Source: Blastocladiella emersonii ATCC 22665 (lineage: Eukaryota; Fungi; Blastocladiomycota). Taken from it: a DNA stretch of 64,000 nt. The notes below the pieces were generated by a model that ran no database searches, was not told where the DNA came from, and worked only from the letters and a program-made list of their open reading frames with translations. Where the stretch lies: NCBI GenBank assembly GCA_025594325.1, contig JANHCV010000002.1:2666001-2730000 (forward strand), in the 5' to 3' direction. The translations under genes were made by a program, and so were the position numbers. Below are positions 39,872-45,497 of the stretch, in pieces. The stretch's first letter is position 1. The number at the start of each line of letters is the position of its first letter.

Positions 39872-40830
39872 ATGAAGACCGCCCCGTCGGCCCCGCTCAT
39901 AACCAAGAACGCCCTCAGCGTCGCACAGGGCAAGAAGACGCTCGGCGGCAGATGCGCGCGGATCGCCGCGGACGTGCACCTGGCGTCGGCGGCCACGCGC
40001 CTCGTCGTGGTCACGACAGCAGCTGCGCCCCTCAAGACGGTCGCGGCGGTGATCACGTCCGTCGAATCGGTCCAGTCGGCGGCCTCGACTAAGGCACGAT
40101 CTCTAACGGCATCGGTCGTGACGGGCTGAGCACTGACGCGCGCGCACTCCTGTATCCAGCCGAAGGCCAAACAGCCGAAGCAGGGCGCCTCACCGTCCCT
40201 CAAGCTGGTCAAGTCGGCGGTCTCGACCAACGTACGTTTTCTCACTCTGCATTGGTCGTGACGGGGCAGAGTACTGACGCACACGCACACCCCCGCATCT
40301 AGAAGTCCCTCCCCAAGAAGGACAAGGAGGGCAAGCTGGTTGCCGGTGCGGTGCTGGACAAGAAGAACGAGGTTCGCCGCTCCAAGCGCGACCAGAAGGA
40401 TTCGCTGGCAGTTGCTCCTCGAGCTCGCCGTGCCCCCGAGTGCCTGCCACGGCAAGAGTGCACCGCGCTGCGTGGACCGCACTCGGTCGGGCGCCGCGAA
40501 AAGACCGCGTCGCCCGCGCGAGTGCGGTCCCCTACACGATTTCGTCAGGCAGCGCGGTGTAGGACGGCCGTGGCCGGGACTCCCGGCGCGGGCGCGGCTA
40601 CACAGGTCGCTGGCCGTCGACGGCGTTGTGATAATAGAAGTCGCTCACTTGCTTGCTCGCAACACTCTTGTTCTGGCCTTGTCGCAGACGAGGTAGAGGG
40701 GACAGAGGCGTGTTGGTCAGATTGGCGTGCAGCACGTGTGGCGCGACACGCTCGCGGCCGCCGAGTTTCTTCGCGGCGGCGTTCCCACGCTCGCTCTCTC
40801 CCCTCCCCCTCGTTACCCGCCGCCTCGTGA
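39872..40830 (+). CDS. Orphan basic (Lys/Arg-rich) protein, 3 predicted exons with a GC-AG first intron; may be decaying
   Basis: CATAAA-like box near 39770. Exons 39872..40093, 40160..40231 and 40303..40830 join in frame. AAG-rich codon usage fades in the 3' part. Confidence 0.45.
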
Positions 40831-41502
40831 AGCTATCGAGCGAAACCTGGCTTCAAGCAACGCATCAACCACCACCGAGCACCCGCAAGTGCACCGCCTG
40901 CCCGTGCCCGAGGCCCAGCACCACGTCCGACACTTGGCGCGCCCTGCTCGCCTCTTCATAAGAGCGCTCGGTCTCCACGCGGGCCTGGTACGCCGTCTTC
41001 TGCTCAACGTGCTCGATCGAAGGTGTGACTAACGGTCGCCTCGCTGCTGCGAGTAGCATCGCTGTTCCCACGCCGGTCGACGCGCCGCTTCTCGCCCAAG
41101 TCAGTCGCCCCGCGCGCCCAGACCTGGTACGCCTCTTTTCCTCCGATCCACCTTGCACCCGCTGCTTGCTCGGCTCCGTGGATCGCGCGGCGGATCGCCC
41201 TCCGCGGTCTCGGCCCGTCGCGCCCAGCGGGCCGACCACGATGGTGGACCGAGCCAGGCAGCATCCCCATCGCACCGATTCAGCTCCTCAACGCTCCCTC
41301 CTCCCCGCAGCTCTTGAACTGCCAACTGACGTCTGCATGTCTCGCATCTAGCGCCCTGCCGCACGTCCTCCGCCATCGAATCGACTCTCGGTCGCCCTCC
41401 CTCGCCGCCACCCCCGCCCACGCCCATCGTCTCCTCGAAATAAGCGTCAAACGTCCGGTCGAACGTTACGACCTCAGTACCCTTCTGGCGCTCGATGATG
41501 AG

Positions 41503-42291
41503 ATGGCGGATCTGCAGGCGGAGACGGCCGCGATCGAAGCCGACGCGGCGTTGCAGGCGGAGGCGGCCGCGATCGAAGCCGCCAACGCCCTGCGGGTGGA
41601 GCAGGCCGCGAACGCCGTGGCAGCGCTCCATCCGAACGGAGACCCAATGCCGACCGCCCCTCGCCGTCGCCGTCGCCTTCGCGCTTCGAGGAACTTCACG
41701 TGGCTCGCCCTGCTCGGTATGGTTTCCTGCGAGTTCTCGCTGGATCGGAGACGCCGTGACTGACGACGACGCGTGTTTGTAGGCATCCTCCTCGCTGCCG
41801 CATGGCCGGTGTACCTGTTCTTCGACACGGTCAAGACGTGCACTGAGAAGCGCGGCCACGTCGTCGTGTGGAGCGACGCCGGCGAGTGGGGCCTCGGCAC
41901 GTTCCAGTGCATCCCGGCGCGTGGTGCCGTCCAGCACGTCGTTGACGGTGGCCAAGATGGTGCCGCCGCGCAGTCGATCCACGACACGCTCGGCGCGGCC
42001 GAGGTGCACCTGGACCGGATCGACAACGAGCTCGCCAAGCCGCAGAGACGTGTAGACGACTCGGTCCAGTCCGAGGACCCCGACGCCGCCTCGTCGCGCG
42101 AGGTCGACCTCAAGCTGGGCGCGAGCCTCGAGGACCTCGACCCCAGCGGGCGTCGTGCCACGTGGCGCGAGCTCGAGGACAAGTGCGCGACCAGCGGGAC
42201 GTGTACCAGGGCGCGCATTCTCGAGTACGAGATCCGCGAGGTCATCGACTTGCTCAACTCGCATGCGGGGTCCGAGTTCCGGCGCTCGTGA
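41503..42291 (+). CDS. Orphan membrane-anchored protein 'A' with N-terminal 13-aa repeats, 2 coding exons
   Basis: ATG 41503. A phase-1 intron 41717..41782 splits the hydrophobic segment (FTWLALLG/ILLAAAWPVYLFF), which is preceded by RRRRRLR. The second exon has coding-like GC3. Confidence 0.6.
41512..41616 (+). repeat. 39-bp tandem repeat (LQAE(T/A)AAIEA...), two copies plus a partial third
   Basis: (C/T)TGCAGGCGGAG(A/G)CGGCCGCGATCGAAGCC occurs at 41512 and 41551. Confidence 0.85.
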
Positions 42292-43679: not shown

Positions 43680-43686
43680 ATAAAAA
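43680..43686 (+). promoter_or_regulatory. TATA box upstream of orphan gene 'B'
   Basis: TATAAAA followed about 20 nt later by a pyrimidine-rich CTCT tract. Confidence 0.55.
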
Positions 43687-44351
43687 CCGGCGCCCGCCGG
43701 CCTCTCCTCTCTCTCCCCCTCAACCCTGCTCTCTCTCTGATAGCAACGTAACTCTACGCATCGGCCACCGACGACCGACCACGCCGCCTGCTCGCGCAAG
43801 TCCAAGTGCCGCGCCCGCTTCGACCGCCGTCCCTCTCCAACTCGCGCGAACCCGCTCGTGCTTCGACACCCCGGCTTCGTTCGGCTCCGCAGCTGTGGTA
43901 CGTGCCCGCTCTACTGTCCGTGGTGAAGTGCGTGCAGGACCCAACTGACTCATGCTGTGCGCGCCCGTCTAGTCCGCTGTTCCTCCACGGCCGGCTGATC
44001 AACGACAAGCGCATCGGCTGCCCGCTTCCCCTCCCTGGTACGCAATCTCTCTTGAACCGGTGCTCTCGCTCGACGAGTACCTGCTTGCCGGCGGCGCTCG
44101 CGTCACGCGGATCGCCGTCCGCTCCGATGCAACGCCGCCGCCGCCCCACCCGCTGGGCGGACGGACACGGCGCGCTCGGAGCGGGCGAGCTGCCTGCGCA
44201 CACCGAGAGCGCCCTGCAATCACCATCACCTACGGCCACCCAACCTAACATGTGTGTGTCATGGCCGTCTGACAGAGAACCCGACAGCCTCTTCATCGCC
44301 ACAGCGCCCCACCATGCGCGACCCCAAGACCCCCCGCCCAAGCACAAGAAG

Positions 44352-45497
44352 ATGCCCGCCGCCGCCACTACCGCCACCACGTCCACGGCGCCCGTGCAGG
44401 CCACTCGGCCGACGGTGCAGTTCAAGCTGACGCTCCTGAGCGTGTCGTCGCTCCGTACGTTTCACCTCTCGTCGTTTGATGGGGATCACGGACCCAGTAA
44501 CTGACGCTTGCTGTTGTCTCTCCCAGTCGCCGTGATCGCGGTTGCTTGCGTCGCCGCGCTCGCCTTGTCCACCACCAAGGGCGGCGTCGCCCGCTCGTCG
44601 GTTCTCTCTGTCGGCGTGGCCGTCCCCGAAGACCCCGTGTTCGGCCACCAAGCCGACGCCGTCGACGTGGCCGTCCCCGAGGACCCCGTGTTCCGCCACC
44701 AAGCCGACGCCGTCGACGTGGCCGTCCCCAAGAGCCCCATGTTCCGCCAGCAAGCCGACGCCGTCCCCGAGGGCGGCTACCACCACGTGTTCCTCCAGAT
44801 CGTGCCCAAGACGACGGCCGGCGTCTTCGGCGGGGCCGAGGCCCAGTACCCCGAGTCGGGCATTACGGGTGCCGCCAGCGCCGAGGACGACGCGGTCGCG
44901 GTGGCGGTGGCGGCCGTCATCGCCCAGTTCGAGTCGCGCGCCATAAGCGGCCTGCTCAACTACGACGACGACTCGGAGGTCGCCGCCGTGGGCCTGTACT
45001 TCAAGTACAGGCTCCGGACCGAGGGCACGGCGGCCGGTGCGGCCAGCGATGCCGCGATGCCTGTCATCCACGGCTTCTCCAAGATCGAGGCTACGGCCAC
45101 GGGCATGCTCCTCGCCCACGACTGCAGCCGCAGCGCCCTCGCCCAGCTGTCCGGCATGGAGCAGCTGCAGATCGAGTCCGACAAGATCAGCGCCGTCTTT
45201 CGCAACGGGTCCGCGGCGCTCGCCACCGCCGGCGAGGTGTACCGCGCAGTCGCCGCGCGCATCGCCAAGGGCAACGGGCCCGTCGAGACCGGCATGAAGC
45301 GCGGCAAGCGCTCGCAGTCTCGGCTCCAGACCGAGCTCGAGATCATCGCAGACGGCGAGGAGCTGCAGCGGCTTACCGAGACCCACGCGGTCCTCGCCGG
45401 ACTCTACGTCAACATCGAGGCCCGCTTCGCCCAGGTCCGCAAGCTGGTCGCCCGCGCCACCGACGAGTGCGCCCGCGGGGCCGCCGCGGACCTGTAG
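44352..45497 (+). CDS. Orphan signal-anchored protein 'B' with 17-aa repeats and a helical C-terminal region, 2 coding exons
   Basis: ATG 44352. A phase-1 intron 44455..44526 lies inside the hydrophobic segment (LTLLSVSSL/LAVIAVACVAALAL). Codon bias is genome-typical. Confidence 0.7.
44616..44765 (+). repeat. 51-bp tandem repeat, about three copies (VAVPEDPVFxHQADAVD)
   Basis: Units start at 44616, 44667 and 44718 and are near-identical. Confidence 0.92.

Follow-up and report, generated by a model that had tools for sequence, protein, structure and literature searches.

Genes A and B are neighbours on the forward strand of a contig of Blastocladiella emersonii, a water mould-like fungus, and they raise the question of whether two genes can keep a common 5' leader when their coding regions cannot be aligned at all. 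The DNA analysed, called the window throughout, is a stretch of 64,000 nt of strain ATCC 22665 (assembly GCA_025594325.1, contig JANHCV010000002.1; window position 1 is record position 2666001). A first-pass annotation had read the two genes as carrying a homologous leader with two introns, and had offered two explanations: a reusable promoter, leader and signal-anchor cassette, or a duplicated family diversifying faster than its leader. We find no measurable conservation of the leader, which is as unalignable as the coding region. Because both lie at the noise floor, the contrast between a conserved leader and diverged coding parts is absent, and the two explanations fail since both require a conserved leader. 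A and B look like ordinary genes for single-pass membrane proteins, restricted to this species and arranged head-to-tail. The block that holds them together with an upstream gene, U, is present in two inverted copies on the contig, a duplication that is new here. The parts of the two genes are as follows.

40790 to 40987, + strand: gene A leader exon 1, predicted; begins with a CT tract (40794-40811), with no TATA box upstream, no ATG and no coding periodicity
40988 to 41056, + strand: gene A leader intron 1, predicted; 69 nt, donor CTG/GTACGC, branch CTAAC, acceptor TAG
41057 to 41126, + strand: gene A leader exon 2, predicted; 70 nt, begins CGCTGTTCC..CACG.CCGG
41127 to 41351, + strand: gene A leader intron 2, predicted; 225 nt, upstream ATGs (uATGs) at 41241 and 41337, motif GCGGATCGCC at 41190
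41352 to 41716, + strand: gene A start exon; main ATG at 41503, 13-aa repeats at 41506-41583, first half of the membrane segment
41717 to 41782, + strand: gene A coding intron; 66 nt, phase 1, within the membrane segment
41783 to 42292, + strand: gene A last exon; second half of the membrane segment and a 155-aa domain with four Cys, stop at 42290-42292
43679 to 43721, + strand: gene B core promoter-like element; TATAAAA, a GC-rich spacer and a 21-nt CT tract
43705 to 43897, + strand: gene B leader exon 1, predicted; no ATG, no coding periodicity
43898 to 43972, + strand: gene B leader intron 1, predicted; 75 nt
43973 to 44037, + strand: gene B leader exon 2, predicted; 65 nt
44038 to 44275, + strand: gene B leader intron 2, predicted; 238 nt, three uATGs, GCGGATCGCC at 44107
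44276 to 44454, + strand: gene B start exon; main ATG at 44352
44455 to 44526, + strand: gene B coding intron; 72 nt, phase 1, within the membrane segment
44527 to 45497, + strand: gene B last exon; rest of the membrane segment, 17-aa repeats at 44610-44775 and a predicted all-helical domain of ~245 aa, stop at 45495-45497

The pairwise comparison of the leaders with shuffled controls, proposed in the first-pass annotation, gave a divided answer that depends on the scoring. Under strict local alignment the A and B leaders score 31, within the range of dinucleotide shuffles (26.6 +/- 2.8, maximum 36), and globally they are 58.1% identical, compared with 55.8% for shuffled sequences. In a BLASTN search (2/-3) of the whole window neither leader is among the other's top 13 hits; with the most sensitive settings the best colinear hit (E 0.002) stands beside a reverse-strand hit (E 0.005). 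Permissive scoring over the whole leader yields z-scores of 3-4, block shuffles that keep local composition 3.0-4.5, and shuffles with the splice motifs held fixed 2.1-4.0, the observed score being reached in 0-13 of 400. Among 823 real windows of the same size, taken from both strands, the B leader comes first against the A leader, barely (55-56 vs 54, 54 and 53), and the runners-up are simply C-rich stretches. Ungapped identity at the six splice junctions amounts to 17-25 of 60 positions, and unrelated introns average 19-20. The matches of highest specificity are CGCTGTTCC, which follows acceptor 1 by 2-3 nt, and GCGGATCGCCnTCCGC, which lies 63-69 nt inside intron 2; a shared run of at least 9 nt, such as the one after the acceptor, occurs in 3 of 378 control pairs, and neither motif has a further copy in the window. 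When the spliced leaders are compared in translation, only low-complexity Pro/Arg-rich matches appear. All the leader evidence together corresponds to a post hoc P of ~0.005-0.03, and the excess over composition-preserving shuffles is borderline. Nor does the idea of a reusable cassette find support: the leaders are not near-identical, and apart from the duplicated arm there is no further copy in the 64 kb of the window or in L002, the second stretch of the same contig that carries the U-A-B block in reverse.

Part of the excess is due to genome-wide signals, namely CT-rich tracts at gene borders, the consensus donor G/GTACGC and the C-rich leaders. The window has 20 pyrimidine tracts of at least 14 nt, of the type of CTCTCTCCCCCTC, most of them directly ahead of a start codon or behind a stop; many CT tracts lie within ~25 nt ahead of a start codon, and two follow directly on the stops of A and B. 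G/GTACGC is the usual donor of this genome. Among the leader motifs once aligned by eye, the CT tracts and the donor are generic, and the set is to be regarded as partly or even largely so. The promoter of gene U and the one ahead of an unrelated gene in L002, which encodes 175 aa, agree at 71% over 106 nt (E 3e-6; no protein similarity), a match stronger than anything between the A and B leaders. This shows that TATA box, GC spacer and CT tract make up a promoter architecture shared in this region. A core promoter of this kind recurs before unrelated genes, with (T)ATAAA, a GC-rich spacer (GGCGCCGGCGCC-like) and a CT-rich tract (window 39729-39833 and 43679-43721; L002 2885-2972). Clusters with a shared leader or constant exon, such as those of spliced-leader trans-splicing, protocadherin and UGT1A, have in common with A and B only the idea of one 5' module before different bodies; they use identical exon sequence, whereas A and B each have a leader of their own, with essentially no resemblance between the two.

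The coding parts carry the usual signature of genes in this genome. GC contents at codon positions 1/2/3 of the last exons are 0.68/0.48/0.89 (A) and 0.72/0.48/0.93 (B), like those of the RecQ helicase and lipase genes in the window, and the ATG exon of A is also well-coding (GC at third positions, GC3, 0.83). Protein A (240 aa) consists of two 13-aa repeats, an RRRRR flank, one membrane segment and a 155-aa domain with four cysteines; protein B (357 aa) has a short N-terminus, one membrane segment, three 17-aa repeats and the all-helical domain. The tandem repeats that had been described as N-terminal in both proteins are real (39 nt x2 at 41506-41583 in A; 51 nt x3 at 44610-44775 in B), but only those of A are N-terminal to the anchor. 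Each protein has a single strong hydrophobic window (Kyte-Doolittle 2.06 in A and 2.6 in B; next-best windows 0.8 and 1.5), and both contain the one hydrophobic segment of ~19 or more residues that defines a single-pass signal anchor. Seven positive charges precede the segment in A, and in B the charges are balanced on both sides; the RRRRR flank clearly points to an N-in/C-out topology of protein A. The phase-1 intron that had been placed inside the membrane segment of both genes is indeed there, 8-10 residues into the sole strong hydrophobic segment. Ahead of the main ATG of gene A are out-of-frame ATGs at 41495 and 41498, and in gene B an out-of-frame uATG at 44314 opens a 38-codon upstream open reading frame that overlaps the start codon.

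Both genes are orphans restricted to the species, and their proteins are as unalignable as first described. No relatives of A or B were found in Pfam, word searches or the ESM Atlas, which gave no usable hit. An exhaustive HMMER search with the A last exon over 1.84 billion representatives returned only A itself and one 1952-aa repeat protein (P0003, E 2.8e-22). The latter was rejected as a relative of A, as 14 near-identical repeats add up to its score, and one unit by itself reaches 29 bits in pairwise comparison. A word search with A returned nothing, and two with B returned just its own two genomic copies; the B last exon as query found one protein at 100% identity, a hypothetical protein of B. 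emersonii ATCC 22665. Neither protein resembles those of the neighbours U and C. AlphaFold2 without an alignment gave confidence scores (predicted local distance difference test, pLDDT) of 49 and 52 for the two proteins and no fold assignment. The structure search that had been suggested as a check was thus run on models of pLDDT ~50, and Foldseek against the Protein Data Bank found nothing significant (only generic coiled coils for B, E at least 0.66; E at least 2.1 for A). In all this A and B are like other taxonomically restricted genes of dynamic duplicated regions: billions of proteins include no relative, neither belongs to a Pfam family, fold confidence is low, and they lie among other unannotated genes inside a segmental duplication, which is nothing unusual for this class.

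The exon-intron structure was examined by a scan of both strands for GTAYG, then the first CTRAC, then YAG, with chance expectations from a second-order Markov model. The scan returned exactly the six introns that the first-pass annotation had placed here, all on the + strand (40988-41056, 41127-41351, 41717-41782, 43898-43972, 44038-44275 and 44455-44526), and no such pattern on the - strand between 39 and 48 kb. Introns of B. emersonii verified by expressed sequence tags (ESTs) measure 55-333 nt, with a CTAAC-like branch and the consensus GT...CTAAC...AG (PMC2773782); all six fall within this range and have the donor G/GTACG, the branch CTRAC and the acceptor YAG. Intron-like matches of up to 100 nt number 27 in the window against ~6.7 expected, so that most of them should be real, and short introns in the leaders can be regarded as plausible; of long matches there are 20 where chance would give ~32, the median length of chance matches being 221 nt. 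No ATG occurs in the 526 nt of leader exons 1 and 2 of the two genes, where 4.8 are expected from the window rate and 3.0 from exon shuffles (P 0.008 and 0.04), and the predicted introns have 6 against 4.9-5.6 expected. This depletion is modest evidence for splicing of the leaders. The leader introns share consensus and length range with the spliceosomal introns of fungal 5' untranslated regions (PMC2773782), but they are predicted, and the two long ones are statistically like chance matches. A small RNA hosted in intron 2 was considered as the cause of the motif shared by the two second introns and rejected, with no Rfam match at E <= 1 and folding z-scores of -0.4 to -2.5.

The published annotation was made with funannotate from ab initio predictors only, without transcript input, and the paper mentions neither RNA-seq or transcriptome data nor untranslated regions (PMC9730499); all exon boundaries at the U-A-B locus are therefore predictions. 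It is conceivable, though unlikely, that the models used here are themselves wrong, either because U and A are one gene, as in GenBank, or because the leaders are intergenic and transcription starts near each ATG. GenBank does fuse U and A in both copies of the block, the frame of A is open from 41353 to its ATG, and for most CT tracts of the window an ATG is under 100 nt away. Yet the same DNA has received different models in the two arms, for U+A (394 aa at window 39872-42291, 308 aa at L002 5521-7940) as well as for B (322 and 357 aa). To build the 308-aa fusion, the non-consensus sequences GTTGCT and GTGGAC have to serve as donors, along with an exon of 16 nt and introns measuring 818 and 538 nt, where EST-verified introns span 55-333 nt and have a CTAAC-like branch. 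The fusion also skips the well-coding ATG exon of A; we consider it an artefact. For the 394-aa model, enumeration of splice paths gives 119 equally valid ones. In the fusion P0002, residues 1-134 of U are joined through RADHD to residues 72-240 of A, and GenBank has probably joined the two genes wrongly. In the window copy of B the 322-aa model uses a later acceptor without a branch motif and thereby removes half of the membrane segment, the skipped stretch having a GC3 of 0.85; in the second copy (P0004, 357 aa) GenBank uses the intron 44455-44526 and agrees exactly with the first-pass model. Intergenic leaders fit poorly with the TATA box and CT tract that stand 630 nt ahead of the ATG of B, and with leader exons 1 and 2 free of ATG.

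As to the origin of the pair, we lean, tentatively, towards a very old tandem duplication. A and B would have lost all sequence similarity and retained only their gene architecture, that is, a long spliced leader and a phase-1 intron that splits the anchor; the leader would have decayed as fully as the coding region, leaving no conserved or reusable cassette. In each gene the 5' leader is probably long, rich in C and poor in ATG, with one short intron or more spliced out; the out-of-frame upstream ATG at each start codon would damp translation, and each gene encodes a single-pass protein, anchored by its one hydrophobic segment near the N-terminus. The layout argues for this: as in old tandem duplicates that keep intron positions and phases after similarity is lost, the two genes lie next to each other on one strand, their intron-like units (two of them in the leader) follow in the same order, and a phase-1 intron splits the anchor at nearly the same place. 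They differ from such duplicates in that no sequence or fold similarity shows between them and that their introns are predicted. Ordinary old paralogs were an outcome that the first-pass annotation had itself listed against its proposals, and, judging by the layout alone, A and B may share an ancestor. Several points weigh against it. The pair was chosen by eye among many gene pairs. BLASTP between the proteins gives E of at least 0.4, and Smith-Waterman z-scores against shuffles run from -0.6 to 0.6 for whole proteins, C-terminal domains, N-terminal parts and membrane segments; the anchor-encoding exons show no similarity either. The repeats precede the anchor in A and follow it in B, and the predicted domain is a small sheet with helices in A and all helices in B (both models of low confidence). 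The leader introns come from sequence prediction alone; those of 225 and 238 nt have lengths typical of chance matches, and because the long class is not above chance they lack motif-based support. In this genome donors often lie 139-189 nt apart, which makes the agreement of 139 nt in A with 140 nt in B weak evidence. A serious competitor, somewhat less probable in our judgement, is that A and B are unrelated neighbours whose layout is coincidental, aided by features found throughout the genome: short introns concentrated towards the 5' end, start regions rich in CT, a strong splice consensus, and frequent interruption of hydrophobic N-terminal segments by introns. Every sequence comparison is at or near noise, several C-rich stretches of the window score nearly as well against the A leader, the long introns are at chance level, multi-donor clusters are likewise present ahead of gene U, and near 25.5-25.9 kb the - strand has three predicted introns whose flanks are non-coding or half-coding. 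Coincidence has to accommodate, however, that the B leader is still first of 823 real windows, that the leader z stays at 2-4 with splice motifs fixed, that two exact 9-10-mers lie at equivalent offsets from splice landmarks, and that the coding introns share phase and nearly the same position in the anchor. Very improbable is a functional, selected leader (promoter, spliced 5' untranslated region and signal-anchor) common to genes with different or hyper-diversifying ectodomains, an arrangement that would fit surface recognition. It would agree with the colinear matches of borderline strength, among them CGCTGTTCC near the beginning of exon 2 and GCGGATCGCCnTCCGC in intron 2, with the overlapping uATGs of both genes, and with the position of two orphans in a dynamic duplicated region. 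Against this stand an identity just 2 points above shuffles, the missing BLASTN link among the top 13 hits, the dissimilar anchor exons, the lack in A of the TATA box present in B and U, and the fact that, the duplicate arm aside, neither the window nor L002 contains a third copy.

The whole block is also duplicated.

38436 to 46390, no strand assigned: arm of the inverted segmental duplication (Megablast and MAFFT, L002 vs window); second copy in reverse orientation on this contig, at L002 4085-12033

The tail of a lipase gene and the U-A-B block are present in two convergent copies on one contig, with ~24 kb between them. Over the whole arm (38436-46390) the copies are 98.2% identical; in the 7.4-kb core (38503-45919) a single base differs, at 43441, and all other differences lie in the shoulders (38439-38502 and 45920-46390), which are ~75-85% identical. 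Weaker homology (83%) continues to the left into the lipase gene. The GenBank entries agree with this picture: the protein cluster of B has two members with locus tags ten apart, and the second B copy is on the same contig in reverse orientation, with its U+A gene at the same offset of 4480 nt. Since the lipase gene is complete at the window arm, and the other arm starts inside the lipase tail, the window arm would be the original. At the second arm a 286-aa hypothetical protein (L002 3892-4792) overlaps the copied 3' third of the lipase gene and is probably a truncated lipase remnant. In the favoured account of an old tandem duplication, the inverted copying would have come much later, its core having been kept or made virtually identical. 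An identical core between diverged shoulders suggests either that gene conversion has homogenised an older inverted duplication or that a second event took place recently. Palindrome arms, which are inverted segmental duplications homogenised by gene conversion, likewise consist of two inverted copies with, as here, a near-identical core and diverged shoulders; the difference is that conversion is deduced here from the identity profile alone, and a two-step duplication may also account for it, as, conceivably, may an assembly effect. Because the cores are identical but for one base, divergence between the arms is uninformative on the constraint acting on leader or coding sequence.

The neighbourhood of the pair shows further features.

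39872 to 40563, + strand: gene U; basic protein of ~185 aa, three exons, with a TATA-like box and a CT tract (39770-39827) of its own

Within gene U a segment of ~138 nt is tandemly duplicated (40056-40302); it covers the end of an exon and the next intron. The donor of the first copy is GC (GCACG) and that of the second GT (GTACG), and P0002 uses the GC-AG intron. Three GGTACG donor-like sites (39458, 39527 and 39605) lie within 150 nt upstream of gene U, and the stretch 39605-39643 resembles the start of A intron 2 (79% over 42 nt, which is noise level). Judging from these motifs, gene U may have a spliced leader too. On the - strand at 25553-25904, upstream of a minus-strand open reading frame, there are three short intron-like motifs (57-59 nt) whose flanks have no coding periodicity on one or both sides; this cluster may represent a further leader with several introns, or else a series of very short exons. 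Downstream, just outside the duplicated arm, is gene C (46653-47456; 257 aa in GenBank), which belongs to no Pfam family and does not resemble A, B or U.

The importance of these findings is mainly for annotation, and little beyond. Generic promoter and splice signals of this GC-rich genome can pass for homology by eye, the ab initio GenBank models at the U-A-B locus are unreliable, and with a near-identical inverted duplicate both short reads and knock-outs affect two copies of each gene. We think it doubtful, and would give it only a slim chance, that A and B, in two copies each, are fast-evolving signal-anchored surface proteins specific to Blastocladiella, of which only the architecture survives and whose inverted repeat is kept identical by conversion. 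If this were true, such a locus could serve surface recognition by zoospores or gametes.

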